Of a stretch of 64,000 bases of DNA, positions 12,503 to 43,580 are shown one piece after another. The stretch covers positions 62,001 through 126,000 of IMG/VR virus record IMGVR_UViG_3300049215_000771; one strand, 5' to 3'. Each line of letters begins with the position of its first letter. Positions within the stretch are counted from its first letter, which is position 1. The translations under genes were made by a program, and so were the position numbers. The notes beneath the pieces are model-generated. The model had not been told where the DNA came from. It searched no databases and saw only the letters and a list, made by a program, of their open reading frames with translations.

Positions 12503-12531
12503 TTGACGCCGAGCAGTTGCCAGGATATTCT
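12503..12531 (+). promoter_or_regulatory. sigma70-type promoter
   Basis: TTGACG-17-TATTCT. Confidence 0.5.
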
Positions 12532-12580
12532 TGTCAGATGGGGCTGGGCGTATGAACATCGTATTTTGAGGAGAGCAAGC

Positions 12581-13882
12581 ATGTCTTCGGACAAAAACGA
12601 AGCCGGCGTGGAATTGCCGGATGGCATTACGCATCTGCATGGTGCCATGTATCTGGTCCGGTTCAACTTGCTGCAAGTGCCGGACCCGGACGCCAAGTGC
12701 GGCGACGAGGCCAACAAGGAGTACGAATTCCGCAACCCCAGGACGCTCACCGAGAAGGGCCAATCGGTCCTGTTCGATAAGCAGAAGTCGCAGGAGATGC
12801 GGGATTCCATCAGGGAGAAGACTCTGCTCACGCCTTTCATCTGCCGCTGGAAGAACAAGGCGGTCCAGATGGTTGGGGGCGAGCGGCGGCATCGGGCGGT
12901 GTCGTGGCTGATCCACAAGAAGGAGATGGTCAAAGACCCCCGCTCGCTCAAGTTCAACGACGACATGGAGCCGCAGTACGATTACAGTCCTGCGGACCAG
13001 GTGTACGAATTCGTCCTGTGTCAAATCTACCATGCCTCCAACGATCTGGATGCTTTGGCTCTCGCTTACACGGAGAATGACTGCCGTGTGAATCAGGGGC
13101 CGGGGCACGACATCGCTATGGTGTTGGAACTCCGCAAGTGCGGTGCTTCCGACGAGAAGATCATGGGGGTGATGTCGAAGGACGAGAAGTGGTTGCGGGA
13201 TACCGACAACCTCATCGCCGGCCTCGACGAGTCCACGTTGCGTGACGTGATCGAGGACACCATCGACCGTGAAGCCGCCCTCGAACTCCTTCCCATCAAG
13301 GAGAAGTTCAATGAGGAAGTCACGGCGAAGGTGAAGGAAGTCGCCAAAGACCTGGCCGACAAAGACTACAAGAAGCGATTCGAGCGTCTGACCAAGCGTC
13401 TGACCGAGGCCCGTGACGAACAGGAGATCGCCGAAGGCAATGTCGCTGATTCTTCTTTCCGCTCCGATGCCCAACAAGCTGAGGATCAGGAGAGCCTGAC
13501 GGAAGCTACGGCCAAGGTGCAACGCATCGCCAAAGACCGTGCCGGCGACAAGCCCAAGGTGACGCCTGGCAATGTCCGCAGTGGTCTGCGGGTCATTGTC
13601 GGCGAAGGTGAGTCCGAGGACGGCGAAGGGACTGCCGCTCCTTCTGGTGGTGCCCGCCCGCCGACTCAACCCAAGGCGTTGCGATACGCCAAGATCAAGG
13701 AAGCCTATATCGACGTTCTGGATGATCTGGTGAAGAAGGGCGGCAAACACCCGGAGTTCAAGGAATTCACCGCTTCGCCTGATGCCTGCAAGCTGGCGAA
13801 GAAGCTGATCTCGGCGCTGGCGACGGGAGACAGCGAGTGCATCGAGATCATTCGCCTTCACTACAAGGGGCTTTCTGGATGA
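12581..13882 (+). CDS. ParB/Srx-like N-terminal domain protein with coiled-coil C-terminus
   Basis: SIREKTLLTPFICR...QMVGGERRHRAV; GAGGAG RBS. Confidence 0.65.
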   Translation: MSSDKNEAGVELPDGITHLHGAMYLVRFNLLQVPDPDAKCGDEANKEYEFRNPRTLTEKGQSVLFDKQKSQEMRDSIREKTLLTPFICRWKNKAVQMVGGERRHRAVSWLIHKKEMVKDPRSLKFNDDMEPQYDYSPADQVYEFVLCQIYHASNDLDALALAYTENDCRVNQGPGHDIAMVLELRKCGASDEKIMGVMSKDEKWLRDTDNLIAGLDESTLRDVIEDTIDREAALELLPIKEKFNEEVTAKVKEVAKDLADKDYKKRFERLTKRLTEARDEQEIAEGNVADSSFRSDAQQAEDQESLTEATAKVQRIAKDRAGDKPKVTPGNVRSGLRVIVGEGESEDGEGTAAPSGGARPPTQPKALRYAKIKEAYIDVLDDLVKKGGKHPEFKEFTASPDACKLAKKLISALATGDSECIEIIRLHYKGLSG

Positions 13883-20883: not shown

Positions 20884-22230
20884 ATGGCAAAGAAAGACAA
20901 GGGTTCGTCGGTCTGTGACTACTGTGGCAAAAGCAGCAAGCAGGCTGGCGTCTTGGTCGAAGGACCGCCAGCGAAAAATGAAGTGAACGGTCGTCCACCT
21001 GGATCGAGGCCGTACATTTGTCCTGGCTGCATCGAACTGTGTGCTGACGTGGTGAAGCAGAAGATGATGAAGCAGGGAACCGCTGATGTCATCCCCAAGA
21101 ACCTGCCGACTCCACGGCAGATCGTGGAGGAACTGGATCAGTACATTGTCGGCCAGGATCGAGCCAAGCGTGTCCTGGCCGTTGCCGTCCACAACCACTA
21201 CAAGCGGCTCAGGGACGATGCCGAGCGGCTGGACACCTACGACCCGGAAGATGAGTTGGCGAACACGACCATCGAGAAGGCGAACGTGCTGCTGGTCGGT
21301 CCTACGGGGTGTGGCAAGACATTGCTGGCCCGGACGCTGGCCCGCATTGTTGGTGTTCCTTTCGCAATCGGAGACGCCACGACGCTCACGGAAGCTGGTT
21401 ATGTCGGCGAAGATGTTGAGAACCTGGTTCTGAAGCTGGTTCGCAACGCCGAATTCAATGTCGAACTGGCCCAGCAGGGTATCATCTACCTGGACGAAGT
21501 TGACAAGATCGGGCGCACTACCTCGAACGTCTCGATTACTCGTGACGTATCAGGAGAAGGGGTCCAGCAAGCCCTGCTGAAGATGCTGGAAGGCACTGTC
21601 TGCAACGTGCCGCCGCAAGGTGGGCGCAAGCACCCGGAACAGCAGTACATCCAGGTGGACACGACCAACATCTTGTTCATCTGTGGTGGAACCTTCGTGG
21701 GCCTGGATCAGATCGTGAAACGCCGCACCGGAAAAAGTGGTATGGGTTTTGGCCAGGTCCGGCCTGCCGGCCTGACCGACCAGAAAGAAAAAAACCAACT
21801 CATCGAGCAGGTTTCGACGGACGACCTGGTGGAATTTGGCATCATCCCGGAGTTTGTTGGTCGGTTGCCGGTCATCGCTCCACTGATGGAGATGGACGAG
21901 GATGCCCTGGTGGACGTGCTGACGAAGCCCAAGGACGCCATCGTAAAACAGTACAAGAAGCTGTTCCGCATGGATGAAGTGAAACTGGAATTTACTGACA
22001 AGGCAATCCGTGAAATCGCCAAACTCGCCATCGAGAAGGGTACTGGCGCTCGTGGTCTTCGCAGCGTGGTGGAAGGTTTCATGACCGACACCATGTACGT
22101 TCTCCCGGAGCATAGCGGAGAAACCATCGTGATCGACGAAAGTATGGTCAAGGGCGAACGTCCGATCTTCGAGAAGCCCAAGGCTGTGGAAATCGTGGAA
22201 CCGCCCAAAGAAGAAGAAAAGGCAGCCTGA
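20884..22230 (+). CDS. clpX: ATP-dependent Clp protease ATP-binding subunit ClpX
   Basis: C4 Zn finger, [41 protein letters not shown]; loop SGMGF at the IGF position. Confidence 0.95.
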
Positions 22231-28259: not shown

Positions 28260-29228
28260 ATGCGCATCACACAACGTATCCCCAGCCCTACAGAACAACG
28301 TGCCCGGAAAATACTCGAACGTCCTTTCCGGTTCATTTTCAATGCGGATTTCGATAACCCGAAGAAACGGAAGGAAATCCTTGGCGAGATGCCAGATATT
28401 GAAAAGTTCAACGAACAAAGAAAGAAGGTGGTTCAGCTTCGCAACGGAGACAAGATTGCCCCGGAAATGCGTCCATGCTACGAGGAACCATTGCTCACAC
28501 GAGAACAGGAGTACCATCTTTTCAGGAAGATGAATTACTTCAAGTATCGGGCCAAGAAGTTGATGGCGGACCTGAATCCGAGACGATGCAGCGATAAGCG
28601 CCTTGATAAAATCGAGTCGCTGCTGGAGGAAGCCAACAAGATCAGGAACCAGATCGGCAACTCCAACTTCCGGCTCGCTACCCAACTGCTCCGCAAGCAG
28701 TCCAGTTTCTACAGGGAACACAGTTTGACGGACGGCCTCCTGAGTGATGCCTACTTTGATGTGTTGAAGGCTATTGACTACTTCAACTTCAACCTGGGCA
28801 ACAAGTTCTCGACGTATTGCACCTGGGTACTGCGGAAGAATTTCAGCAGGGATTTGAAAAATCAGGCGAAGTATCAGGAACGCTTCACGACGGGAATGGA
28901 AGACCCGCTGAACGAAATCAAAGATGATGGTGATGGCTACAAGGAAGAAATCACTTACGAGAACAACCGCAAACTGGTTGACAAATTGTTGGAACTTCTG
29001 GCTGAAAGCGACTGCAACGGTGACGTGCAGCGCCAGGTGTATGCGATTGAGGAGTGGTTCGGACTACACGGAAAAGAACACCGCACCCTCGACGCCATCA
29101 GTCAAGATATGGACGTTACCAAAGAAAGAGTCCGACAACTCAAGGAGAAGGGGTTGCAGGTGATTCGGGAAAAAGTGAAGGAACTTGGAATCGTATTTGA
29201 GGAAGCTGATGAAGAAGAAGTGGCCTGA
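28260..29228 (+). CDS. sigma-70 family RNA polymerase sigma factor
   Basis: Region 2 SNFRL...LKAIDYFN...KFSTYCTW; region 4 RTLDAISQDMDVTKERVRQL; LFRKMNYFK. Confidence 0.88.
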   Translation: MRITQRIPSPTEQRARKILERPFRFIFNADFDNPKKRKEILGEMPDIEKFNEQRKKVVQLRNGDKIAPEMRPCYEEPLLTREQEYHLFRKMNYFKYRAKKLMADLNPRRCSDKRLDKIESLLEEANKIRNQIGNSNFRLATQLLRKQSSFYREHSLTDGLLSDAYFDVLKAIDYFNFNLGNKFSTYCTWVLRKNFSRDLKNQAKYQERFTTGMEDPLNEIKDDGDGYKEEITYENNRKLVDKLLELLAESDCNGDVQRQVYAIEEWFGLHGKEHRTLDAISQDMDVTKERVRQLKEKGLQVIREKVKELGIVFEEADEEEVA

Positions 29229-30189
29229 AGGCACGCAACTGACCGTCAATGAGAATTCTTGTGATTGGCCCAGCACCAAGGACAAGAAGGAGTGGCTGTG
29301 TTCGGCGGCATTCCCGGCACCTGACAGTGCCGGGATTCGTCCTTTGTACATCACTGGTCGGGGCCGGGTAAAATCTACCTGGTTCGCATCCGGGTACGGA
29401 CCCACGGCCCTGGAAGCGGAAGATGCCTGTTGGGAAAATTACAACAGCATCATCAACTGCAAGCATGATCTTGAGAGGATCGCTCACGTCGATCTTCCCG
29501 ACGACCAGCCCAAGGTTTACTTGTTGGATGGTGATGCTGTTTGTAAAACGTGTCAATTGTATCTTCCTTTCTACTACATGGATGACCGGCTGCATAAGTC
29601 GATGTGCCTGGCCCATCGTGGACATGAACACCAGAAGCGGAAGTATGGCGACCGCCCTTACATCGTGCATCCCCGCCAGGTCTACACGAAAACTGCATTC
29701 TGGAAGCCGAAACGCCCGGAAGAAGAGCGCATCGTGATGGGTTGCGCCGCCTGGATGCACGACCTGAAAGAAGATTGTCAAAGCAAGGACTCCAACCCTT
29801 TCATCTCGGATGATGAGATGAGGGAAGCAGGCGGCGATCAATCGTTTCAGTTGGTGTACTGGCTCACGAACCCATCGAAAGGCGTGAAGAAGCCGAGGGC
29901 TTACCGGAAGCAGATGGATCGGGAGCATATCGCTGTTGCCCCGCACCCGGCGAAGATCATCAAGATGTTCGACCGTATCTGCAATCTGAATGATTTGTAC
30001 GAATGCAACGACATGGATTTCTTGGCTCTCTACGCCAGCGAGAGCCGGCTGTTGTGGGATGTCCTCAAGGATGCAGACGAGAAGCTGGCACGGGACATGC
30101 TCGCTGTGATCGAGCAAGTCGAGAGGAGAGCGCAAAATGGCATCAACACCAGGAGTTCGCAAGACCCACAAAATCTATCACAAGACTAA
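29209..30189 (+). CDS. HD-domain hydrolase, RelA/SpoT (Mesh1/SAH)-like, with extra N-terminal domain
   Basis: HQKRKYGDRPYIVHP, AAWMHDLKED, KMFDRICNL. Confidence 0.8.
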   Translation: MKKKWPEGTQLTVNENSCDWPSTKDKKEWLCSAAFPAPDSAGIRPLYITGRGRVKSTWFASGYGPTALEAEDACWENYNSIINCKHDLERIAHVDLPDDQPKVYLLDGDAVCKTCQLYLPFYYMDDRLHKSMCLAHRGHEHQKRKYGDRPYIVHPRQVYTKTAFWKPKRPEEERIVMGCAAWMHDLKEDCQSKDSNPFISDDEMREAGGDQSFQLVYWLTNPSKGVKKPRAYRKQMDREHIAVAPHPAKIIKMFDRICNLNDLYECNDMDFLALYASESRLLWDVLKDADEKLARDMLAVIEQVERRAQNGINTRSSQDPQNLSQD

Positions 30190-31348
30190 CCCCAACAGCT
30201 TGCCGAATCCCTACAATTGGGAACTTCGCATCAGGTTGTTGGACCAGGCCGGCGAATTTATCGAGATGGTCAGCCAGATCGCTGCATTCCGTCTCCTGAA
30301 AGGTGATGCCGCCGAACTGGTTCTTGTGAAGGAACCAACCATCCAGTTGAAGGTTCCTACTGAGGAGTGGCGACCCTTCGCTAAAGGTGCGCCTCAAAAG
30401 CACCAAGCGAAGTGGCACAACTGGTTGCACGCCCGCCGCACCATCTTGTACGGCAATTATCACATCTTGTCTCCTGAAGGCCATCTGATGTTCCATTGCA
30501 ACAATCAGAAGGCTTTGTGGTATCTCAACCGTGACCTGGTTGAGATCGTCGCCCACGATCCGCCCACCCTCCAGTTGAAGTTTATTCCTGGCGGGCCGGG
30601 GCACGTCGGCGATGACTACTACCTGACTCCGAAGATCAATCGCTGTGTGGTCTGTGGTGGTACGAACGGCCTGAATCGCCATCACGTTGTTCCGAGTTGC
30701 TACAGACGCTACATGGGATTGGACATCAAAAGCCATTCCTACCACGACGTTTTGTTGTTGTGCCTGGATTGCCACGAGTCCTACGAGGTCGAGGCCAATA
30801 GGCTGAAACATGAGATCGGGGTGGAGTACAACTGCCCGACGCATTGCATCTACGACCGACAAACAGGCGAGATGGTGTTGTACGATCATGACAACGGCAG
30901 GGCCGTTCAAGCCGCCATCGCCCTGGTCCGCAACGGAGAACGGATTCCTGAACCCCGCCGCCAGGAGTTGATGTCCCATATCTCGTCATGGCTAGGCCGA
31001 GAGGCTACCCACGATGACGTGCTGGAAATTTCCAAGCGGGGGCATCGCCACAGGAAGATGGAAGGCTGCTACGACCACGGTGAATACATCGTCCGCCAGA
31101 TGAAAAATCTGGCAGATGTACAAAAATTCATCGAGCGATGGCGACATCACTTCCTGGCGGTGATGCAGCCCAAGTACCTGCCGGCGAATTGGGACGTGGA
31201 GAAGGCAATTCTGCCGGAAGATTACGAACCTATCGGCGGTTCGCTGAGTCTTCACCATGAGCGGAGCCGAGAGTACGAGGGTCCGAAGCGTCCTTATTGG
31301 AGGAATCCTGATGGGGATGGTCAAACACTACCTGATGGAATACTGTGA
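30137..31348 (+). CDS. HNH-like protein resembling the C-terminal domain of eukaryotic EXD2
   Basis: LYGNY.ILSPEG...KALWYL...YYL...CVVCG...HHVVP.CYRR...SHSYHDVLLLCLDCH; RWRHHFL..MQPKYLP. Confidence 0.7.
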   Translation: MASTPGVRKTHKIYHKTNPNSLPNPYNWELRIRLLDQAGEFIEMVSQIAAFRLLKGDAAELVLVKEPTIQLKVPTEEWRPFAKGAPQKHQAKWHNWLHARRTILYGNYHILSPEGHLMFHCNNQKALWYLNRDLVEIVAHDPPTLQLKFIPGGPGHVGDDYYLTPKINRCVVCGGTNGLNRHHVVPSCYRRYMGLDIKSHSYHDVLLLCLDCHESYEVEANRLKHEIGVEYNCPTHCIYDRQTGEMVLYDHDNGRAVQAAIALVRNGERIPEPRRQELMSHISSWLGREATHDDVLEISKRGHRHRKMEGCYDHGEYIVRQMKNLADVQKFIERWRHHFLAVMQPKYLPANWDVEKAILPEDYEPIGGSLSLHHERSREYEGPKRPYWRNPDGDGQTLPDGIL

Positions 31349-31526
31349 GGCGACCTGTCCCGGCGACTACGACGCCCAGGATGAGTTGTTCGAGCAGATC
31401 GTCAGCGGCGAGGTCAAGGTGTCGCTGGAGGAAATGAAGGTGGTGGTTGACCGTTACAGGGGGAGGGATCATGTACAAGAAATACCCAAGAACCCTCCAC
31501 CTTCCGTGGAGTCCGGGCCGCAGTGA
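31311..31526 (+). CDS. small acidic hypothetical protein
   Basis: GGAGGA RBS. Confidence 0.5.
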   Translation: MGMVKHYLMEYCEATCPGDYDAQDELFEQIVSGEVKVSLEEMKVVVDRYRGRDHVQEIPKNPPPSVESGPQ

Positions 31527-32109
31527 CGACGACAAGGTTCTCGACGGAGTTGAACACTTCGTCGGGAAGGAAATCATCGTTACTGAGAAGCTGGATGGGG
31601 AAAACACCACCATGTACCGGGATCATATTCACGCCCGGTCGATTGATTCCAAGCATCACCCTTCCCGGACCTGGGTGAAAGCCGAGCATGGTCGTATTCA
31701 ATCCGACATTCCAGAAGGATGGCGGATTTGTGGCGAGAACGTGTACGCCAAGCATTCGATTCATTATCGAGGCTTGACGGCGTACTTCTATGTTTTCGGC
31801 ATCTACAACGACCAAGACCTGTGCTTGTCGTGGAACGACACGGAGGAATACGCCACCCTTCTCGGCCTGCAAATGGCCCCGGTTTTATACCGTGGCTCGT
31901 GGGACGAGAAGGAAGTGAGGGATTGTTGGACGGGCGAATCTTGCTACGACGCAGAACAGGAAGGCTACGTTGTTCGTTTGGCGAGTTCCTTCAAATACGA
32001 GGACTTTGCCATCTCCGCAGCGAAATTCGTCAGGGCGCATCATGTCCAGACCGACGAGTTCTGGATGTCGCAACCTGTGGTTCCCAACCTGCTCGCCCCG
32101 ATGGAGTAA
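31471..32109 (+). CDS. RNA ligase family protein
   Basis: KYPRTLHLPWS, TEKLDGEN, ICGENV, EGYVVR, AKFVR. Confidence 0.85.
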   Translation: MYKKYPRTLHLPWSPGRSDDDKVLDGVEHFVGKEIIVTEKLDGENTTMYRDHIHARSIDSKHHPSRTWVKAEHGRIQSDIPEGWRICGENVYAKHSIHYRGLTAYFYVFGIYNDQDLCLSWNDTEEYATLLGLQMAPVLYRGSWDEKEVRDCWTGESCYDAEQEGYVVRLASSFKYEDFAISAAKFVRAHHVQTDEFWMSQPVVPNLLAPME

Positions 32110-33614: not shown

Positions 33615-33694
33615 TCGGCTAAAGTCCCGCCCAGCTTTGGTCGATATTACTGTAGAACGACAACGTAACTTTCAACAACGAACAGGAAACCATC

Positions 33695-35356
33695 ATGGGA
33701 CGTAAACTCGAAAAGTCCACCTACCCATCCGGCCACGGCCCGAACGATTTCCAGTGTTTCGGCCCGCCCGCCACCGAAGACGGGAATTTCGACACCTGCA
33801 AGATCGCCGACATGGGTTCCTTCTCCCAAGAGGAGAAAGATTCCAACAAGTATTATCACGCCGCCGTCGTCAAGTCGAAGATCAACGGCAACTACTACAC
33901 CTACTTCGAGTGGGGCCGGGTCGGGGCGTCCAAACCTGCTTTCCAGTTTGTCGAGTGTGGCAGCGAGGCCGACGCCCAGCGGGAATTCGCCGATCAGTGC
34001 CACGAGAAGAACGACAAGCGTGGCGTTTGGACAACCGTGGCGGGCCATCGCACGCTGACGGCCAAACCCAAGAAGGACGTGTATCTCGTCCGCCAACTCG
34101 CCACCCGTTCCACGGGTCTGCCCGATGCCAAAACCATCAAGCACACTGAGGGCGCAAAGCCGAAGCCGAAGCCCGGCAAGCCCGACGATGCCAGCGCTAC
34201 CGACAAGCCGACGAAGAAGGAAGCGAAACCAGCGGCCCCAGCCCGTCGTGCCGATCCAGTCACCAGTAAATTGCTTCAGGATTTGATCGGCGGCACGATC
34301 TCCTACACCCGTGGGAGCATGGCCGACGACTCGATTCCGACGCAAAATGCCATCGACATCGCTCGTGATGTTCTCACCGAGGCCGAGAAGCGACTGTTGA
34401 AGGTCGGCAACAGCCTCGATGACCAGATCGCCGACAAGGAACTTCGCCAGTTGTCCGGGGAACTGTACCGTCGCATCCCGAAGAAGAAGCCGGTTGGGAC
34501 GCCGGACAAGGTGTGGATTCTGTCCAGCGAGAATATCTTCTCCTGGCGGAACGACCTGGACGCCTTCGAGTCGGCGTTGTCGGCCCAGGCCGGCATTGAC
34601 GAACAGGCCGGTCAGGTTGCCGATCCCTTCCACGGCCTGCCCCTCACGATGGAATACATCGACCCGAAAACGGAACTCGGCAAGTTCCTCTACTTCTGGT
34701 GGCCGAAGGCGACGGCCAATCGCCACTACCACCTGAAAGACATGAAGATCAAGAATATGTGGAAGGTGGACCGCTTCGGCGACCCGGAGAAGGTTCGCCG
34801 CTCGCAGGACCGCATCGCCACCGAGATCGGCAAGGCGGCGCTGAAGGAACGGCCCTTGTTCCAGCCGTCCGAACGCTACGATGTTCCCGACATCAACGAG
34901 CGCAAGCTGTTCGGTCAGACCAACACGGCGCTGTTGTTTCACGGCACCCGTTCCGTCAACGTGAAGGGCATCTTGGAGAAGTCGCTGTTGCTGCCGAAGC
35001 AACTGGTCGGCGTTTCCATCAACGGGGCCATGTTTGGCCCTGGTCTGTATTGGGCCGATGACTGGAAGAAGTCGGCAGGCTACACCAGCTTGTCGGGTTC
35101 GCTCTACTCGGCGGGCTATGGCGGGGTTGCCGGTCGCCATGCCTTCATGTTCGCCGCCGATGTCGTCGTGGGGCAGCCACACGTTGCTCCTGGGCCGCAC
35201 GGTTATACCAGCCCGCCGAAGGGCCATCACTGTGTCTTCGGTATGGGCCGCAACCACACCAGCAGCCGCCAGAACAGCGGCGTGGAGAACAACGAGTGGA
35301 TCGTGTTCTCCGGTGAACAGTGCCGTCTCCGCTACCTGGCGGAATTCACGGCGTAA
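33695..35356 (+). CDS. WGR-domain poly(ADP-ribose) polymerase-like ADP-ribosyltransferase
   Basis: FEWGRVG (WGR); helical regulatory segment LSGELYRRIP; catalytic LLFHGT (H), MFGPGLYWAD (Y), NNEWIVF (E). Confidence 0.9.
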   Translation: MGRKLEKSTYPSGHGPNDFQCFGPPATEDGNFDTCKIADMGSFSQEEKDSNKYYHAAVVKSKINGNYYTYFEWGRVGASKPAFQFVECGSEADAQREFADQCHEKNDKRGVWTTVAGHRTLTAKPKKDVYLVRQLATRSTGLPDAKTIKHTEGAKPKPKPGKPDDASATDKPTKKEAKPAAPARRADPVTSKLLQDLIGGTISYTRGSMADDSIPTQNAIDIARDVLTEAEKRLLKVGNSLDDQIADKELRQLSGELYRRIPKKKPVGTPDKVWILSSENIFSWRNDLDAFESALSAQAGIDEQAGQVADPFHGLPLTMEYIDPKTELGKFLYFWWPKATANRHYHLKDMKIKNMWKVDRFGDPEKVRRSQDRIATEIGKAALKERPLFQPSERYDVPDINERKLFGQTNTALLFHGTRSVNVKGILEKSLLLPKQLVGVSINGAMFGPGLYWADDWKKSAGYTSLSGSLYSAGYGGVAGRHAFMFAADVVVGQPHVAPGPHGYTSPPKGHHCVFGMGRNHTSSRQNSGVENNEWIVFSGEQCRLRYLAEFTA

Positions 35357-35417
35357 CCATCACGATGATCTAACGGAGTGGGATGGAAAATTCCCACTCC
35401 GTTACTTGGAGGAAACC

Positions 35418-36668
35418 ATGAGAAACGAAGAACAGGCCAAGCAACTCTACATCCCGGAGAAGTTGGCAGTCGGGTTCCAGAAACGTGAAGGAACCTACAA
35501 CGGGATGCTGGCCTACGTCATCTACTACGACAAGACCGGGACGCTTCGGAAAGAAAAATCCTGGCAGTCGTGGCGTGACAAGAAGATCAAGGCGCAGGAG
35601 ATCGAGAACAAGCCCACCGAAGGCTTCGTCCTCAACAAGAAGGTCGGCGGCTACAAGTCGCACTGGAACTTCCGGGACGCCCACGTTCGGGTGTACGATC
35701 CCAGGGGTTTCGAGTTCGAGATTTCAGTCCCGAACCTGTTGTTCATCCTCCGTGAAGGGGCTTGCTCGCCCGGCAAGGGGTTGGAAGGCCAGTTCGTGTA
35801 CGCCTGGGAAGGCACCGAGTTGGTGTTGCTGCCCTGCCATTCGGTGGACTACAAGAACAGCCAGAACTTCACCGACCTTCAGGGCAAGTCGGTCGGGGCG
35901 AAGGAACTGAAGGAAGGGGTGACGTACCTCACGAAAAAGCAGGAGGAACTGACCTACCTGGGCAAGTTCGACTACCACTTCCAGTACAATATCGCCCGCA
36001 ACCACTACTACGGGATGCAGTCGTATGCTCACTACAGGGGCTATGACGTGAACGAGGAGTGGAAGCACCCGCCCAAGAAGGACCAGAAGGGCGTCGTCAA
36101 GCGCTACGTTTTCTGGAATGGCAAGGAATTCGTCTACCTGAACGATCTCAAGTCGCTCGGTACGGCCAAGGACGACGGCGTTCATCCCGACTTCGCCGAG
36201 TTGGTGGACAAGTACAACAAATCCCCGCACGGCAGCAAGGTGGTGAAACTCTTCTTGAAGGAAGTCCCCGGCAAGAAGAACCCCGACCACTGGCAGAACC
36301 AGGAAGAAGACTGGTTCTACGAGGACTCGGACGGCACGTTTGTCGAATGCCAGACCTATTACGCCTGGAACAGCGCCCGCAACAAGCGTGACGTGATCGA
36401 ATACATCCAGGCACAGGCCAAGTGGTATATCGACGAGAAGACCGGCCTGCTGACCAGGAAGGAATACAACGCCATCTGTTATTCCAAGGACGTGGAACAG
36501 AAAAACAGGCAGGAGTACAACCACAAGACCGGGCGATACGAAACCATCAAGAACACGATGGAATGGCGTGAGCCGACGAACTTCCGCCTGTTCGCCCAAA
36601 CCGAGAACGGCGGCAAGCATCGGGCTTGTGGGCCGAGCTACAAGAACGCTTTCGAGAAGGAAAAATAA
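35418..36668 (+). CDS. hypothetical phage protein
   Basis: GGAGG RBS; RVYDPRGFEFEISVPNLLFIL; strong codon bias. Confidence 0.7.
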   Translation: MRNEEQAKQLYIPEKLAVGFQKREGTYNGMLAYVIYYDKTGTLRKEKSWQSWRDKKIKAQEIENKPTEGFVLNKKVGGYKSHWNFRDAHVRVYDPRGFEFEISVPNLLFILREGACSPGKGLEGQFVYAWEGTELVLLPCHSVDYKNSQNFTDLQGKSVGAKELKEGVTYLTKKQEELTYLGKFDYHFQYNIARNHYYGMQSYAHYRGYDVNEEWKHPPKKDQKGVVKRYVFWNGKEFVYLNDLKSLGTAKDDGVHPDFAELVDKYNKSPHGSKVVKLFLKEVPGKKNPDHWQNQEEDWFYEDSDGTFVECQTYYAWNSARNKRDVIEYIQAQAKWYIDEKTGLLTRKEYNAICYSKDVEQKNRQEYNHKTGRYETIKNTMEWREPTNFRLFAQTENGGKHRACGPSYKNAFEKEK

Positions 36669-36785
36669 TGGCCCATCGTGGCTATTACGGTGGCCGAAAG
36701 TCTCGTCTGAAACATTTGACGGGCGAGACTTTCGACACCGCTGCGAAGAAAAAACCAAAACGGCATCCAAACAAGGAGAAAGATC

Positions 36786-37229
36786 GTGGCAAAGACCGAC
36801 AAAAAGACACTCGAACTGATCGAGCAAGTGAAACGGGATCGGGCTGAAATCGCCAAGCTGGACAAGCCCAGCTACAAGACCAACTGCTCGTTCACCTACA
36901 TCGAAGGGAACCGGGGCAGCGCAACCAACATTCACGTCGAAACGGACGTGAAGAAACTGATCCTGATGGCGGCGTTCCTGACGGAGAAGGAAAATTCCTA
37001 CAAGGGAGCGGCCAAGCTGCTCGGTGTGGAGAAGATTCCTGATTTCACCTGGGACGGCTACACCGTCGCCGAATGGCTGCAAGACCTGAAGACCCGCATC
37101 AGCAAGGTTCAGATTTCCAGCAAGAAAGCGAAGCTGGAGGCGCTGGAAGCCCGGCTGAAGAAGATCATCAGCCCGGAACTTCAGGCCGAACTGGAACTGG
37201 CCGATATTGAGAAGGAGTTGGGGGACTAA
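36786..37229 (+). CDS. coiled-coil hypothetical protein
   Basis: AAGGAG RBS; 147 aa. Confidence 0.65.
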   Translation: MAKTDKKTLELIEQVKRDRAEIAKLDKPSYKTNCSFTYIEGNRGSATNIHVETDVKKLILMAAFLTEKENSYKGAAKLLGVEKIPDFTWDGYTVAEWLQDLKTRISKVQISSKKAKLEALEARLKKIISPELQAELELADIEKELGD

Positions 37230-37238
37230 TCTTGCCGC

Positions 37239-37270
37239 ACGACTGCCTGGGGAATTCCCCAGGCAGTCGT
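37239..37270. repeat. 32-bp perfect palindrome
   Basis: ACGACTGCCTGGGGAATTCCCCAGGCAGTCGT; no U-tract. Confidence 0.85.
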
Positions 37271-37352
37271 ATACCCCCTGCGAAAATATGCGAGTTTCCG
37301 AACCTAGTGGATATTCGCCGGTCTTCTGAGTAGAAAGGGGGTTACGTTACCC

Positions 37353-37559
37353 ATGAAAAGCAAGATCGTTCTGGAGCAGCACGGAGCTACGATTAGCCCT
37401 GTGCCAGCGGGCAAGGCACAATATGATGTCGTTGCCCTTCACAACCGCACTCGTCCCTTGATCGGCGAGACTCTGACCGAGGAAGACGTGAAGAAGCTGC
37501 TGGCCGATGCCCGTGGCAACTTGACCGTCGAGATCAAGCCGTCCAAGAAGCGGCGCTAA
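37353..37559 (+). CDS. hypothetical protein
   Basis: 68-aa ORF. Confidence 0.6.
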   Translation: MKSKIVLEQHGATISPVPAGKAQYDVVALHNRTRPLIGETLTEEDVKKLLADARGNLTVEIKPSKKRR

Positions 37560-37602: not shown

Positions 37603-38391
37603 ATGGCTACCGCAGGAGTCCGCCCCGTTGTCGAACAGGTCTGTGATGAGCAGGTCCACAACGGCGGCATGTTCACCGCCCACGATATTACCCTGGAGGT
37701 CCGCAACCGGGGGCATCGTGTGGGGCATCACGAAGTTCGAGACGCCGTTCACGACTATTTCGCTCGTGGCGGTATGGGTGTCGCATATACCCGCACCACT
37801 ATCAGCGTTCCCGCAGGTGGCACGCCCTTCCTGTATCACCGCACCGCCGACGATCCGGCCACTTACGGCAATATCCGTGGCGTCGGCCTGGTCCCCAATC
37901 CGTCCGTCAATACGATCTCCGTTCCGCCCCCGTCCAGTATCGCCAGCACCGATGACGACGAGGAAGACGACGAAGAAGATGAAGACGATGAAGACGACGA
38001 CGTGGTGGACCCCAGCGCCCTGGGCTTGCCCAATTCCGTTGCAGGCGTGGCCGTCGCAAGCCGGCCCAAGACTCACCACAAGTCCAAGTCGGCCAACAAG
38101 AACAAGCTGGTCGGTCGCACTGTTGATGGCCGTGCAACGCTGTCGTTGCCCTCGCCGTTGGTTCGGGCTGCTGGGTTCAATCCTGGCGACAAGGTGTACG
38201 CTACCGGCGTCCCTGATGGCGTGGAAGTCACCTTACACCCGACCAGTGCCGCCCTGTGTCGCAAATACACCGTGGACAACCACGGCCATATCCGCCTGAC
38301 GCAAGGTCTGTTGAAGCGTGCCGGCATTCCTGGTGGCGCTTACGATGTGTCGGGCGACAATACCAAGATCACGGTCAAACTTCACAAGTAA
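37603..38391 (+). CDS. protein with acidic linker and tandem AbrB/MraZ-like C-terminal domains
   Basis: RTVDGRATLSLP..LVRAAGFNPGDKV and YTVDNHGHIRLT..LLKRAGI. Confidence 0.55.
   Translation: MATAGVRPVVEQVCDEQVHNGGMFTAHDITLEVRNRGHRVGHHEVRDAVHDYFARGGMGVAYTRTTISVPAGGTPFLYHRTADDPATYGNIRGVGLVPNPSVNTISVPPPSSIASTDDDEEDDEEDEDDEDDDVVDPSALGLPNSVAGVAVASRPKTHHKSKSANKNKLVGRTVDGRATLSLPSPLVRAAGFNPGDKVYATGVPDGVEVTLHPTSAALCRKYTVDNHGHIRLTQGLLKRAGIPGGAYDVSGDNTKITVKLHK
37951..38001 (+). repeat. low-complexity Asp/Glu tract (17 codons)
   Basis: DDDEEDDEEDEDDEDDD. Confidence 0.85.
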
Positions 38392-38433: not shown

Positions 38434-38487
38434 CTGAGCATTGACAGCGAGCCTGGTTGTTATCCCAAATCACAACGGAGGATAGTG

Positions 38488-40164
38488 ATGAGCGACACCG
38501 TTACCCTGACCCTGGAAGAGTTGGAAGAAATCAAGGCCCAACTCGTCGAAATGGATGCCGTTCTCACTCGGCTCCTGGCCCAGCCCCTTGTTTATGCAAC
38601 GGTCGTGAAGGCCGACAACAAGTTTCATCTGGACGCCTTCGAGCAGGGCGACCGGATGTTGGTGATCGACAAGAACCTTCGCAAGCAGAAGAAGTTCTAC
38701 GGCAAGATCGCCAGCCAGGGCGTCGATGACGAGGGCTGGGTCATCTTGGAATATCCCACGGGCGGGCGTGACCGGCTCAACATCGGCCTCAACGGGGAAT
38801 TGCCGCAGGTGAAACTGATCGGCAAGGACGACGGCACCAACGTCGTCATCGCCCATGACGGCAAGCTGTTCGAGGTTCACGGCTTGCCGGGGAAGGAATT
38901 CCATCCGTCGTCCACCGTCAAGGTGGATATGGAAACGAAGCAAATCCACGACGATGCTGGCGTCAGCGCCGCTGGTGACGTGGCCTACATCAAGACCATC
39001 GTGGACGAGGAACACGTCGAAGTGGAGAGCAACGGCCACAGCCGGGTCGTCATCCACGGCGTCAAGGACGAGGAAGGCGAATCCGTCAAGATCGAGCCGG
39101 GCGACCGGGTGATGTTGGATCACACCAACACCATCACCGTCCGTGTTCTCGAAAAGGACAACGCCGACCGCTTCAACCTGATCGAGCAGCAGAACGTCAC
39201 CTGGGACCAGATCGCCGGCCTGGGCGACGTGAAGGAATCGCTCGTCGAAGCGCTGGAACTGCCCTACCAGCACCCGGACATCTTCAAGTTCTACAACAAG
39301 AAGCCGCCGAAGGGCGTGTTGCTCTACGGCCCTCCGGGTTGTGGCAAGACCCTGTGTGCCAAGGCCGCTGCCAACAGCATGGCCCGCATCCACGGCAAGG
39401 AAAACTACCAGTCCGGGTTCATTTACGTCAAAGGCCCGGAATTGTTGAGCAAGTGGGTCGGCCAGACCGAGGCCGAAATCCGCCAACTGTTCGTCCGTGG
39501 CCGGGAACACTACAAGAAGCACGGCTATCCCGCCTTGCTGTTCATCGACGAAGCCGACGCCATCCTCCCGATGAGGGGTTCCGGCAAGTCGTCGGACGTG
39601 GAAAATACCATCGTTCCGATGTTCCTGTCGGAAATGGACGGCCTGGAGGAAGCACACCTGATGGTGTTGCTCGCCACCAACCAGCCGAAGCGTCTGGACC
39701 CCGCCGTGACTCGTGAAGGTCGTGTGGACCGGAAGGTTCGTGTCGGTCGTCCGACCGCCAAGAACGCACACGAATACTTCAACCTGCACATGAAGGGGAT
39801 TCCGGTCGCCGAGGGGTTCGAGGCGGAAGAACTGACGGCCCTGACGATCCGTGACCTGTTCAGCGAGAAGCGGGGTCTGTACACCGTCCAGTACAAGAAG
39901 CAGACCCATCTGTTCAAGCTGGGCGATGCCGTCAGCGGCTCGATGATCGCAACCATCGTGGATCACGCCACGAGCCAGGCCATGAAGCGTGACCTGCACG
40001 CCGGCACGCAAACGGGTGTGAACCACACCGACTTCCAGGACGCCGTGAACGGAATCTTCAAGCATCACGTCGAACTCAACCCGACGTTCGATCTCGAAGA
40101 ATTCTGTGATGCCAACAGCATCAACCGGAACGAGGCGACGTTCTCGAAACTGGTTCACGCATAA
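38488..40164 (+). CDS. AAA+ ATPase, ARC/Mpa (proteasome ATPase)-like
   Basis: N-terminal coiled coil and OB-like region (IEPGDRVMLD), GPPGCGKT, VKGPELLSKWVG, FIDEAD, SSDVENTIVP.FLSEMDG, LDPAVTREGRVD. Confidence 0.8.
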   Translation: MSDTVTLTLEELEEIKAQLVEMDAVLTRLLAQPLVYATVVKADNKFHLDAFEQGDRMLVIDKNLRKQKKFYGKIASQGVDDEGWVILEYPTGGRDRLNIGLNGELPQVKLIGKDDGTNVVIAHDGKLFEVHGLPGKEFHPSSTVKVDMETKQIHDDAGVSAAGDVAYIKTIVDEEHVEVESNGHSRVVIHGVKDEEGESVKIEPGDRVMLDHTNTITVRVLEKDNADRFNLIEQQNVTWDQIAGLGDVKESLVEALELPYQHPDIFKFYNKKPPKGVLLYGPPGCGKTLCAKAAANSMARIHGKENYQSGFIYVKGPELLSKWVGQTEAEIRQLFVRGREHYKKHGYPALLFIDEADAILPMRGSGKSSDVENTIVPMFLSEMDGLEEAHLMVLLATNQPKRLDPAVTREGRVDRKVRVGRPTAKNAHEYFNLHMKGIPVAEGFEAEELTALTIRDLFSEKRGLYTVQYKKQTHLFKLGDAVSGSMIATIVDHATSQAMKRDLHAGTQTGVNHTDFQDAVNGIFKHHVELNPTFDLEEFCDANSINRNEATFSKLVHA

Positions 40165-40183: not shown

Positions 40184-40224
40184 AAAGACCCGGCGTCTCT
40201 CATGTAGACGCTGGGTCTTTTGTG
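40184..40224 (+). terminator. intrinsic terminator
   Basis: AAAGACCCGGCGTCT...AGACGCTGGGTCTTTTGTGT. Confidence 0.75.
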
Positions 40225-40253
40225 TTTACAAGGCATGATTCTTGGGGTATGAT
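40225..40253 (+). promoter_or_regulatory. sigma70-type promoter
   Basis: TTTACA-17-TATGAT. Confidence 0.7.
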
Positions 40254-40259
40254 ACAGCC

Positions 40260-41489
40260 ATGTTCAATCTCTCCGAGGCGCTGGAGGCTCTGAAGGGCCA
40301 CGACGAGTTTGCAATCAAGGCTTATGACGGCCTGGTTACGCTTGACTACATTTTATGCTTCCCAGGCTCGTTCGATGCCGCAGAAGCCGAAATCGTGGCT
40401 CGTGGAGAGGCACAGGCTCACCGGGATGCAGAAATTCGCCGGAACTGTCGAGGGGTGACTTTCGACGAAAAGACTGGCGAGATCGTGTCTTTGCCGCTGC
40501 ACAAGTTTTTCAACATCGGCCAGACCGAGCAAACGCAGTTCCGCCACTTAACGTCCTGCAAGGCACGGATTTACGAGAAGATGGATGGTTCGATGATCCA
40601 CTTCTTCGTCCACCCGCACCGTCAGGAGTTGCTGGCGTCCACCTGCCGCTCGACGCAAACGCCCCAGGCGCAGGAGTCGCTGGGGCTGGCGAAGAAGAAC
40701 CAGCTTGTCTACGGCAAGATTCTCGCTATCATCGGTGAGGGTTGGACTCCGGTTTTCGAGTACGTCGCTGCACACAACCAGATCGTGGTGCAATATCCAC
40801 GTCCCCGGTTGGTGTATCTGATCTCTCGTCACCGGAAGACGGGCGAGTATAAGTTCCACGAAGGGTTCCCGGATACGGCAACGTATTTTGAGTTTCCCTT
40901 CCAGGACATCAACAACTACTTGGACCGCAAGGAATTCGAGGGCTACGTTTGCCACCTGGAATTCACGGAAGATGTTTCGTGCATCAAGGCGAAGAAGGGT
41001 GACAAGACGATTGTGAAGGCCAAGACGCCCTGGTACTTGGAGCGTCACCGGGCAGTGGATGCCCTGATGAGGCCGACCTACAAGTTGTACCAGGTCGTGT
41101 TCGATGGTGTCATGGACGACCTGTTGCCAACGGCTCCTGATCGGTTCAAGCCGAAGCTGGTTGGAATCTACGAAGAGGCGCAGCGTGATCTACTGAACGA
41201 GCAGCGCCGTGTTGAGAAGTTGTTCGATCTTTCGTTGGCGGCAGTGGAATCCGTTTGGAGCAGGACGTTCTCTCACGGAAAGCTGCCGGAACGCAAGATG
41301 GATCGGGTTCTCCGCAAGGCGTTCGTTGAGTACATCCAGCAGCACTACAAGTCGGATTTCTCTCTGCTGATGGCCCTGTATCTCGGCAATGACCCGTCTC
41401 CCACCATCAAGGACCGATTGATGGAAGGGTACAAGCTAAAGTACCCAAATCGGCTTTTTGCTGATTTGGAAGAAGAAGCTGTCGCATGA
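40260..41489 (+). CDS. T4 Rnl1-like RNA ligase
   Basis: CRGVTFD, LHKFFN, YEKMDGSMI, VFEY, EGYV, KAKTPWY. Confidence 0.88.
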   Translation: MFNLSEALEALKGHDEFAIKAYDGLVTLDYILCFPGSFDAAEAEIVARGEAQAHRDAEIRRNCRGVTFDEKTGEIVSLPLHKFFNIGQTEQTQFRHLTSCKARIYEKMDGSMIHFFVHPHRQELLASTCRSTQTPQAQESLGLAKKNQLVYGKILAIIGEGWTPVFEYVAAHNQIVVQYPRPRLVYLISRHRKTGEYKFHEGFPDTATYFEFPFQDINNYLDRKEFEGYVCHLEFTEDVSCIKAKKGDKTIVKAKTPWYLERHRAVDALMRPTYKLYQVVFDGVMDDLLPTAPDRFKPKLVGIYEEAQRDLLNEQRRVEKLFDLSLAAVESVWSRTFSHGKLPERKMDRVLRKAFVEYIQQHYKSDFSLLMALYLGNDPSPTIKDRLMEGYKLKYPNRLFADLEEEAVA

Positions 41490-41783: not shown

Positions 41784-42512
41784 ATGCCAATCCAGATTGG
41801 AAACATCGAGAAGAAAACCGACTCCCGCTGGCTCAACCTGTTTGAAGTCGATTATATCGGCATGACAGGCAAACCCGGCAAATGGCAGTTCGCCTCACGC
41901 AATCCCAACCCACAGCCCGGCCCCAATCCCATCACATCCAACGCCGTCATCATCGTTCCCCTCCTCAAAGATGGGCGCAAGCGGAAACTCGTCGTCATCA
42001 AGGAATTTCGCATTCCCCTGGGTGATTACGAGTATGCCGTCCCTGCCGGCCTGTTCGATCCGGGCGAGGAACTTGTCAAAACCGTCAAGCGGGAACTGAA
42101 GGAAGAAACGGGCTTGAAAGGGACGAAGATTCTCGTCACCAGCCCCGCCGTGGTTTCCAGCGCTGGCCTTTCCGATGAAGCCGTCAACTACGTTTTCGTC
42201 GAATGCACTGGCATCCCTGACAACAGTGGCAACGAGGGTACTGAAGACATCACCATCGAAGTTCTGGACATCGAAGGCGTGGCGAAACTCCGACGCTCCG
42301 GGGCCAAGATGTCTTCCAAGTTGTGGCCCATCCTCCTCATGTTCGAGGCGATGGGAAAAATCGCCATTCCCAGGAGCATCAGAGATGAAAATCGTAAGGC
42401 ATTACAACGAGGAAGAACTGAAGCAACTGCTGACCAAAGCGGTGGAGTTTCCGCAGAAGAACCGGCAGTTGAAGGTGAAGGAGATCAAGTTCCGAGTCAC
42501 GGAGCAGCGTGA
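41784..42512 (+). CDS. Nudix hydrolase, ADP-ribose pyrophosphatase-like
   Basis: KEFRIP...PAGLFDPGE.......RELKEETG; SSAGLSDE. Confidence 0.85.
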   Translation: MPIQIGNIEKKTDSRWLNLFEVDYIGMTGKPGKWQFASRNPNPQPGPNPITSNAVIIVPLLKDGRKRKLVVIKEFRIPLGDYEYAVPAGLFDPGEELVKTVKRELKEETGLKGTKILVTSPAVVSSAGLSDEAVNYVFVECTGIPDNSGNEGTEDITIEVLDIEGVAKLRRSGAKMSSKLWPILLMFEAMGKIAIPRSIRDENRKALQRGRTEATADQSGGVSAEEPAVEGEGDQVPSHGAA

Positions 42513-42582
42513 CGCCCACGACCGGCCTGGATTCGGGAACGTCGTCGAAGCGGAGATCGAAGTGGAGGAAGAAGAAAGATGA
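42385..42582 (+). CDS. small hypothetical protein
   Basis: AGGAG RBS; overlaps the Nudix tail; ATGA overlap with the next gene. Confidence 0.5.
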   Translation: MKIVRHYNEEELKQLLTKAVEFPQKNRQLKVKEIKFRVTEQRDAHDRPGFGNVVEAEIEVEEEER

Positions 42583-43580
42583 ACCTAAAAGACAAAGTAC
42601 GAGGAACCTTCCTGGGCCTCGCCATTGGCGATGCCCTGGGGAAAGCTACGGAATCGCTGTCGTTCAACACCATCATGGAGAAGTTCGGCAGGATTACCGA
42701 CTACATCAGCAATCCCCACCACAAGTATTTCGATGGCGCTCCCGTTGGCTCCTGGACTGACGACACTCAGCTTTCTCTTGCTGTGGCTCGTGGCATTGCC
42801 CACAAAGGCGAATTCGACCTGGATGCCATTGCCGAGGAACATTGTGTTGAGTTCATGAAAACTGTGGCTGGTTGGGGCAACACTACCAGAGAAGCCATCG
42901 CCAAGATCGTGGACGGTGGGCACTGGTCCCAGGCCAGCCTCACAGACCAACCCAACCGAGGCGTCGGCAATGGCGTGGCAATGAAGGTTGCCCCTGTTGG
43001 TTGCTACATGGCCTTGACCAACCCCGAATGCAACAACCCGCAGTGGGGCGAGGATGTGAAAAAGCTGATGAAGCTGGCGACTATGACGCACTTCACCAGC
43101 ATGGCGATTACTTCGGGATTCGCCCAAACCTTCGCCGTGTTCAAGTGCATGATGTCGGACCCCGAAAACTTCGATGTCAAGTCCTTCATCCGAACCATCA
43201 ACGGCGCAGGCATGATGGGGCGGCGGTACTTGTTCAAGACCATTACCCAGGATGACATTGCCAACAGGTTCGGCCTGTTGGAAAAATACGACGAGTACCC
43301 GCCCGAACGCATCATCGCCGAGTTGAAGGGTAGCTGCTACGTCTACGAGTCGCTGCCGTTCACCTTCATGTTCTTCGTCCGTAACCCACACAGTATTGAA
43401 ACGCTGTACGATGTGGTGACGGCGGGCGGGGACACGGACACCAATGGCTCCATGCTCGGCGCTCTCCTGGGCGCTCTGCACGGCACAGACATCTTTCCCG
43501 AACATCTGGTTGACGGCCTCCGTGAACGTGAGATGGTCATGGAAGTCGCCGACAGGATGTACGACAAGTTGAAGGGCTAA
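42579..43580 (+). CDS. ADP-ribosylglycohydrolase (DraG/ARH family)
   Basis: GLAIGDALG, WTDDTQ, GNGVAMK.AP, GGDTDT. Confidence 0.92.
   Translation: MNLKDKVRGTFLGLAIGDALGKATESLSFNTIMEKFGRITDYISNPHHKYFDGAPVGSWTDDTQLSLAVARGIAHKGEFDLDAIAEEHCVEFMKTVAGWGNTTREAIAKIVDGGHWSQASLTDQPNRGVGNGVAMKVAPVGCYMALTNPECNNPQWGEDVKKLMKLATMTHFTSMAITSGFAQTFAVFKCMMSDPENFDVKSFIRTINGAGMMGRRYLFKTITQDDIANRFGLLEKYDEYPPERIIAELKGSCYVYESLPFTFMFFVRNPHSIETLYDVVTAGGDTDTNGSMLGALLGALHGTDIFPEHLVDGLREREMVMEVADRMYDKLKG

Follow-up and report, generated by a model that had tools for sequence, protein, structure and literature searches.

Introduction

Poly(ADP-ribose) polymerases 1 to 3 (PARP1-3) are central to DNA-damage signalling in eukaryotes, and the role of their prokaryotic and viral counterparts is a standing question. 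Bacterial PARPs in which a WGR domain is followed by a helical region and an ADP-ribosyltransferase (ART) domain have been published, and models show in them a regulatory domain that Pfam often misses (PMC5966428). PARPs of phages and bacteria have been described in several studies (PMC4245714, PMC5966428, PMC7824862, PMC9503650), the phages among them being few (also PMC11662467). HaPARP, from Herpetosiphon aurantiacus, is DNA-dependent and makes poly(ADP-ribose) (PAR) in a reaction reversed by its cognate PAR glycohydrolase (PARG), and CdPARP makes PAR as well (PMC8120803, PMC4245714). Here we describe a PARP gene in a stretch of 64,000 nucleotides (hereafter the window), which corresponds to positions 62001-126000 of the 532,729-bp IMG/VR virus record IMGVR_UViG_3300049215_000771. 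The gene lies at window positions 33695-35356 on the plus strand and encodes 553 amino acids (aa) arranged as a WGR domain, a linker, a helical regulatory domain (HD) and an ART domain. Together with a recurrent neighbour that we call X, we read it as a reversible system of ADP-ribosylation, gated by nucleic acid, that serves conflict between phage and host or between phages and does not simply drain NAD, a reading to which we assign a probability of roughly one half.

The systems closest to this locus share some of its parts. The PARPs of H. aurantiacus and Clostridioides difficile CD160 likewise combine WGR, helical and ART regions with an H-Y-E catalytic triad, whereas the window protein falls in a clade of its own, restricted to huge phages and Planctomycetota, and adds an N-terminal extension, a beta-hairpin after the WGR domain, a K/P-rich linker and an insertion of some 30-40 residues in the ART domain. 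Human PARP2 and PARP3 have cores of the same minimal WGR-HD-ART architecture. The motifs flanking the triad in PARP1/2/3 are kept, together with a second tyrosine (Y463) and a lysine (K459), at about 17% identity in structural alignments, while the zinc fingers and BRCT domain of PARP1 are missing. We know of no HPF1-like factor for the window PARP, which has instead a partner of prokaryotic DNA-binding type, X.

Cultured jumbo phages (Xanthomonas XacN1 and Xoo-sp13, Klebsiella FBKp34, Stenotrophomonas CM1/RAS14) carry H-Y-E ARTs annotated as poly(ADP-ribose) polymerase (PMC7824862), but these match the window protein only over the ART domain (aa ~395-551) or over HD and ART (aa ~194-551), at 22-37% identity. 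Alt, ModA and ModB of phage T4 are also NAD+-using ADP-ribosyltransferases; they are, however, R-S-E mono-transferases with neither WGR domain nor HD. The H-Y-E site, WGR domain and HD of the window protein rule out an R-S-E mono-ADP-ribosyltransferase identity, and the contrast with T4 Alt/Mod drawn in an initial reading of the bare sequence (the original prediction) was right. Finally, type XIII retrons (Mx162/Mx65 type) combine a SWIM/DEDE protein with a WGR-like and HEAT/ARM accessory protein that co-evolves with the reverse transcriptase (RT) (PMC7736814), and the closest cellular homologs of the window PARP adjoin such genes.

Since bacterial and phage PARPs are already published, the window PARP is no new kind of enzyme. 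The original prediction correctly called bacterial examples sporadic but overstated their rarity, given the studies cited above. What is unreported in the literature searched, which was incompletely covered, is the pairing of PARP with X, the attachment to retrons and the size of the clade: we found there no PARP with an AbrB or winged-helix partner, none in type XIII retrons and no account of how large the clade is. This clade supplies hundreds of compact, intact WGR-HD-ART enzymes and a conserved candidate partner. One phage combines a writer of ADP-ribose marks with several erasers and NAD+ salvage, and in the bacterial cousins of this PARP the genomic surroundings connect it directly with anti-phage retrons. 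The simple PARP-X pair and the retron-PARP operons thus make the role of bacterial and phage PARPs approachable.

Domain architecture and predicted fold of the phage PARP

By its sequence and predicted fold, the open reading frame (ORF) at 33695-35356 is an intact PARP of the DNA-dependent type. It begins with ATG and has no internal stop. In a Pfam scan of the single sequence, WGR (PF05406, aa 44-108, E 5e-10) and the PARP catalytic domain (PF00644, aa 400-551, E 8e-19) both scored above their curated cut-offs, while PARP_reg gave no match even at E <= 1; the PHROGs match is phrog_23333, 'polymerase'. The profile search proposed as a check in the original prediction thus recovered two of its three domains through Pfam, and the third through a family profile, described below.

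The first 149 residues (33695-34141) comprise a family-specific N-terminal extension, the WGR domain with its signature W73-G74-R75 (33911-33919), and a beta-hairpin at aa 110-123, followed in the family alignment by an invariant YLVR..TRSTGLPDA motif. A K/P/A-rich linker with a net charge of +5 (aa 150-186, 34142-34252) is predicted to be disordered from its composition and its low predicted local distance difference test (pLDDT) values; its sequence varies, but all relatives have one. It leads into the HD (aa ~187-314, 34253-34636), recognised by profile alignment and fold, with the motifs YRRIPKK (aa 258-264) and LDAFES (aa 288-293). The ART domain (aa ~315-553, 34637-35353) carries the triad in the motifs FHGT (aa 415-418; H416, 34940-34942), GLYWA (aa 450-454; Y452, 35048-35050) and NNEW (aa 532-535; E534, 35294-35296). 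Within it, a conserved insertion at aa ~363-400 (34781-34894), made of a helix (aa 363-378) and the segment ERPLFQPSER, is specific to the family and falls opposite a gap in PARP1 in the profile alignment.

In direct comparison with the PDB, the closest sequences were PARP1 WGR-HD-ART constructs: FHGT corresponds to PARP1 WHGS and GLYWAD to GIYFAD, the E534 motif aligns with YNEY, and weak collinear stretches extend over the WGR and helical segments. We take these PARP1 motifs to hold the H862-Y896-E988 triad, in the numbering of the literature. A profile of 524 positions, built from 50 full-length relatives with identities down to 23%, aligned with the PARP1 WGR-HD-ART crystal construct 4dqy_C in one stretch (profile positions 38-521, E 9.8e-68). 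This alignment crosses the HD, placing 'LtnelYsrIPkk' opposite PARP1 'LSNRFYTLIPHD' and 'LDaf' opposite 'LDNLL'.

An AlphaFold2 model computed from the 50-sequence alignment reached a mean pLDDT of 89.1 and a predicted template-modelling (TM) score of 0.85. Values below 50 are limited to the linker at aa 162-170 and a loop at aa 438-444, with block means of 47-55 over aa 151-180, and the HD helices span aa 188-303. With Foldseek, the whole model matched DNA-bound PARP1 (8g0h_B, E 4e-23) over ~560 columns, and PARP2 (6x0l_P) was also matched over ~560 columns covering all three domains; the TM score to PARP1 4dqy_C was 0.75 normalised to the target and 0.63 to the query. The family profile alignment and the predicted fold together answer the miss by Pfam, and by both lines the helical segment is homologous to the PARP regulatory domain. 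The WGR domain, helical regulatory-like segment and H-Y-E triad of the original prediction, and the PARP1/2/3 core architecture it deduced from them, are hence borne out by motifs, profile and fold; the predicted structure also keeps the ART fold, the loss of which had been named as grounds for abandoning the idea.

None of the 50 sequences departs from H416, G417, Y452, K459, Y463 or E534, a constancy far beyond chance. In the same alignment conservation is 90% or more at N51, Y54, G74, L288 and D289, and N51, K52, Y54, G74 and K105 of the WGR domain are invariant or nearly so. From the conservation of N51/Y54, W73-G74-R75, L288-D289 and 'YrrIPKK', the elements on which gating by DNA breaks depends in PARP1-3, it can reasonably be inferred that ADP-ribosylation by the window PARP is triggered by DNA ends.

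A recurrent neighbouring gene, X

Gene X (37603-38391, plus strand, 262 aa) recurs downstream of PARP in related phages and is also a neighbour of it in Planctomycetota. Its model shows a confident winged-helix N-domain, a disordered linker that is acidic in this phage, and a confident C-domain of AbrB type composed of two half-repeats. The C-domain also found MazE/MraZ-type clusters in an atlas search, at low confidence, and gave a weak Pfam match to MazE; the N-domain has no Pfam match. F24, A26, H42, H50, Y62 and Y78 of the N-domain never vary, and the histidines and tyrosines among them (H42, H50, Y62, Y78) could form a ligand or metal site rather than serve plain DNA binding.

Searched with a hidden Markov model of its N-domain, X adjoins PARP in 9 of 19 phage loci and in 21 of 35 planctomycete loci, standing alone in eight of the latter and fused to RT in 13. 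The reverse approach, starting from X, found PARP within 8 kb upstream in 7 of 10 viral X loci, and three of these seven (L074, L076 and L078) carry a different, canonical WGR-PARP_reg-PARP subfamily: all three matched WGR and PARP in Pfam, while PARP_reg passed its cut-off for L074 and L078 but was only weakly matched by L076. In L076 and L078 X (L076:7971-8654; L078:7977-8639) lies 34-62 bp downstream of PARP; a further copy is at L080:6510-7256. In a third lineage, represented by P0189 (32% identical), an X-like gene follows PARP after 4 bp, with an NAD-dependent DNA ligase alongside. X thus accompanies three divergent WGR-PARP lineages.

Distances among PARPs and among X proteins are correlated over 31 pairs (Mantel r 0.50, with none of 2000 permutations as high), a correlation to which shared genome ancestry contributes. 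Prediction of a PARP-X complex scored 0.51 against 0.00 for the best control, rated 'weak support': of 78 solved complexes 51 attain this mark, as do 2 of 108 mismatched pairs, but passes at or below 0.60 are more often wrong than right. The predicted interface joins aa 103-113 of X to aa 327-339 and 388-395 of PARP, the latter within the family-specific insertion.

In the window itself PARP and X are 2.2 kb apart, compared with ~245 bp in the closest relative, L010. The intervening plus-strand stretch (35400-37559) holds three ORFs, matching phrog_2475 and phrog_2574 and, for the third, encoding 68 aa; they have no counterpart in related loci, and the insertion is confined to this phage. For the one at 35400-36668, an atlas search brought no useful match.

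Distribution of the family and the retron link in Planctomycetota

At least 857 homologs came from a word-indexed search, in which many full-length members lay on 300-670-kb contigs, and an exhaustive search of representatives returned 1297 clusters at E <= 1e-3, 73 of them at E <= 1e-30. Among 50,697 deposited phage records the only full-length match was the uncultured 595-kb phage LR756511.1 (99% coverage, 61% identity), while IMG/VR contributed 18 full-length PARP loci. In one-genome-per-species collections 34 of 35 loci belong to Planctomycetota, including complete chromosomes of 7.8 and 8.3 Mb, and this phylum is likely to be that of the phage's host. The family is present in just 2 of the 301 Planctomycetota genomes sampled, one being the centre genome itself, so PARP is a sporadic accessory gene there.

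A maximum-likelihood tree unites 26 planctomycete sequences (99/98) and places the phage lineage L012-L014 as their sister (94/96); at least four further phage lineages, the window's among them, join at the base as an unresolved polytomy with long outgroup branches. This topology would fit a single transfer between phage and bacterium, in either direction. Histone-H1-like, K/A-rich N-terminal tails of up to ~130 aa occur on the planctomycete PARPs L051, L054, L055, L057 and L058, and may point to an association with nucleic acid.

A retron-type RT of type XIII lies within 6 kb of PARP in 19 of the 35 cellular loci. Where the flank suffices, the order is HEAT-ARM_XIII, SWIM_XIII, RT_XIII and PARP on one strand, with PADLOC E values of ~1e-137 to 1e-155. 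The operon is exemplified by L037:23-7620 on a Gemmataceae chromosome and is the same in L038-L041, L043, L044, L046, L052, L056, L059 and L060; in L054 and L058 the retron set is downstream of PARP and inverted. The N-terminus of RT is the X N-domain in 13 loci, and X is a separate gene beside PARP where RT is shorter (L048, L050) or absent (L045, L047, L049, L061, L066). Of the PADLOC WGR_XIII model, the HEAT/ARM protein of Planctomycetota covers the HEAT part alone, so PARP may supply the WGR. Neither PMC7736814 nor the 2026 survey PMC13712802 mentions PARP as a type XIII component.

A broader proposal can be built on these loci, which we advance tentatively and consider rather doubtful as a whole. 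PARP and X would be an undescribed two-gene nucleic-acid sensor of huge phages and Planctomycetota that was taken up by type XIII retrons, with PARP as the effector, its WGR domain reading the state of multicopy single-stranded DNA (msDNA) or the ends of invading DNA, and the winged helix of RT-fused X acting as a tether; the phage copies would be either the ancestral source or a counter-weapon. If so, poly-ADP-ribosylation of the PARP type would be an immune output in prokaryotes, and the DNA-damage PARPs of eukaryotes would have kin in an ancient conflict system.

ADP-ribose erasers and NAD+ salvage

The phage encodes several enzymes that could remove or recycle ADP-ribose. Downstream of PARP lie a weakly NudE-like NUDIX hydrolase, of a type acting on ADP compounds (41784-42512, plus strand), and directly after it a first ADP-ribosylglycohydrolase (ARH; 42579-43580, plus strand). 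The NUDIX gene is syntenic with PARP in L010, L014 and L027, and this ARH, which is about equidistant from the DraG/MJ1187 and ARH3 types, in L010, L012, L013, L014, L023, L026 and L079. A second ARH (60635-61582) is Tri1-like and of the ADP-ribosylarginine hydrolase type (6dre_A, E 8e-56), which makes it a candidate antidote for arginine-specific ART toxins rather than an eraser of PARP marks.

The genome also encodes two macrodomains and an NAPRTase-family enzyme. A macrodomain gene, a 160-aa ORF and a PARG-like gene form a tight array at G000:C1:523648-525459 (L069:9649-11460). The PARG-like protein is of bacterial type, with 213 aa, a signature of GGG, 13 residues and QEE, and a GAWGCGAF motif. 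The array lies near the end of the record in phage-like surroundings, close to a DnaB-like helicase, a dCMP deaminase and a DegT-type aminotransferase. Bacterial-type PARG was also present in all three PARP-carrying planctomycete genomes examined, against 1 of 14 controls; with the PARG-like ORF of the phage, this speaks indirectly for polymers as the product of PARP.

A proposed gated, reversible ADP-ribosylation module

We propose that PARP and X act together as follows. By homology with PARP1-3 and the Herpetosiphon enzyme, the WGR domain would bind a nucleic-acid end or nick, and binding would lift autoinhibition by the HD so that NAD+ reaches the H416-Y452-E534 site. ADP-ribose, probably in chains, would then be added to the enzyme and to proteins bound to DNA close by. 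Comparative genomics indicates that PARP and X work as a two-gene module, in which X may restrain PARP, direct it or be modified by it. The signal written by PARP during infection could be erased or recycled by the ARH, NUDIX, macrodomain and PARG-like enzymes of the phage and sustained by NAPRTase-family salvage. A role in conflict is favoured over one in core repair because the homologs in cells occur sporadically and keep company with retrons, and because the phage copies sit among RNA-ligase, NUDIX and ARH genes, a setting typical of NAD/ADP-ribose conflict regions (PMC9503650). Plain NAD drain, one of the uses put forward in the original prediction, is unlikely because the phage has several enzymes to erase ADP-ribose in addition to one of the NAPRTase family for salvage.

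A number of observations count against this proposal. An H-Y-E site with E534 retained is no guarantee of polymer synthesis: the loop preceding E534 is ~27 residues shorter than its PARP1 counterpart in the profile alignment, N532 takes the place of the tyrosine in the PARP1 LLYNEY motif, and PARP3 and PARP4, although of the H-Y-E type, count as mono-transferases. The view that the retained glutamate is compatible with polymer synthesis stands, but as compatibility and not as proof. X is missing within 8 kb of PARP in the L015-L025 clade and beside the distant PARP P0223; its Foldseek matches, to the DNA-binding domains of MraZ, PadR and Fur, all have E > 0.008; and synteny in phage genomes can mirror shared timing instead of function. 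The runs of the complex prediction agree on at most 24% of contacts, and given this disagreement and its weak support we do not use the prediction as proof. PARG is absent from five related phage genomes, four of them at least 98% complete, and ARH from five genomes of the L015-type clade and its neighbours, three of them incomplete; we accordingly rejected PARG, although present here, as a conserved partner of PARP, and ARH, although syntenic with it in other lineages, as a universal one. No RVT_1 match was found anywhere in the 533-kb phage genome, and no RT in 18 related full-length phage loci. The retron link is thus indirect, and we rejected the phage PARP as a type XIII retron component, an arrangement found only for the planctomycete homologs. 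Lastly, short, 100% identical contigs within PARP and the downstream ORFs, from four moss or plant metatranscriptome libraries, suggest transcription in situ, but carry-over of DNA is possible and the comparison had no silent-region control.

PARP might instead be a housekeeping break sensor that marks nicks and breaks in the replicating 533-kb phage DNA and coordinates their repair or ligation, as PMC11662467 proposes for the 'PARP1' genes of jumbo phages. The gated architecture shared with eukaryotic PARP1-3 would suit such a role, as would the two ligase-family genes flanking PARP in the window, the NAD-dependent DNA ligase and GyrB-like genes next to the distant relative P0189, and the retention of the PARP gene in at least five deep phage lineages. 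The flanking ligases, however, belong to RNA-ligase families (PF09414 and T4 RnlA) and not to the DNA ligases, no known PAR-reader repair factors were identified, and cellular homologs that are sporadic (2 of 301 genomes) and tied to retrons and a toxin-antitoxin pair show the pattern of conflict genes. We regard a housekeeping role as somewhat unlikely.

The arrangement of the two genes could also be that of a toxin and antitoxin, with PARP as an effector toxic through NAD+ consumption or mass ADP-ribosylation and X as DNA-binding antitoxin and autoregulator, serving addiction or the abortion of superinfection by rival phages. The tight operons in which X follows PARP, with gaps of 4-62 bp, are what such a pair would look like; an AbrB/MazE/MraZ-like domain is present in X, which adjoins PARP in most lineages, and the disordered linker of X is weakly predicted to dock on the ART domain. 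A PemK toxin-antitoxin pair adjoins P0112. Retron effectors are themselves toxins held in check by RT-msDNA (PMC7736814), and the X N-domain is fused to RT in the planctomycete loci. Yet in this phage PARP and X are separated by 2.2 kb and three ORFs, X is bigger than typical type II antitoxins and has its domains arranged otherwise, an autoinhibited, WGR-gated enzyme has no obvious need of an antitoxin, and no PADLOC model matches PARP. On balance we think a toxin-antitoxin or exclusion function unlikely.

Nucleic acids rather than proteins might be the acceptors of ADP-ribose. PARP1-3 are able to cap phosphorylated DNA and RNA ends in vitro, and a phage enzyme doing so would feed or block repair by the neighbouring RNA ligases. 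Synteny with the PF09414 ligase, the T4 RnlA-family ligase, NUDIX and ARH, and the nature of WGR as an end-binding module, agree with this idea; the synteny is perhaps coincidental, however, and sequence cannot tell protein from nucleic-acid acceptors, and we judge it quite improbable. Ungated takeover of the host, whether by constitutive action on host proteins as with T4 Alt/Mod or by burning of NAD+, is very improbable: ARTs are a common first-line strategy of phages (PMC9503650, PMC7824862), but a constitutive enzyme would have no need of the strongly conserved WGR domain and autoinhibitory HD, the phage has salvage and eraser genes, and the PARP gene lies outside a head or packaging context.

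Phage genome and neighbouring genes

The assignment of the locus to a phage is borne out by the IMG/VR record, which has an estimated CheckV completeness of 100%, by an ORF for the large terminase, and by PHROG family matches among neighbouring ORFs. The record is labelled 'provirus', having been excised from a 673-kb contig; the phage occurs in moss metagenomes and has one copy of PARP. An antisense ORF of 536 aa (33647-35257, minus strand) covers almost the whole PARP gene and was taken, without a scan against family libraries, as a shadow ORF and not a gene; many similar long antisense ORFs occur across the window, with its GC content of ~50-60%.

PARP is flanked by two RNA ligases of different families that lie within 9 kb, a PF09414 ligase (31447-32109, plus strand), kept as upstream neighbour in five phage loci, and a T4 RnlA-family ligase (40242-41489, plus strand); the pair suggests a capacity for RNA repair. 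Between X and the second ligase lies a proteasome-type, Mpa/PAN-like AAA ATPase (38485-40164, plus strand), also a neighbour of PARP in L010, L026 and L027, which scores 330 bits with TIGR03689, below cut-off, and is IetA/TRIP13-like in PADLOC. Its gene is followed at 40184-40220 by a strong terminator-like hairpin with a 15-bp stem. Upstream, 30137-31348 encodes a 403-aa protein that has no family match and contains a Cys/His-rich, HNH-like-looking motif; it precedes PARP in L010, L012, L013 and L023 as well.

Further upstream are genes for a sigma-70-like factor (28260-29228), a metal-dependent phosphohydrolase (29185-30189, phrog_990), a ClpX-like ATPase (20884-22230) and a protein with a ParB N-domain (12503-13882), a typical auxiliary set of huge phages. 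Among the other homologs, P0113 is two genes away from an SMC gene, and an intein interrupts the dCMP deaminase (L083:6605-7519) downstream of the distant PARP P0223.

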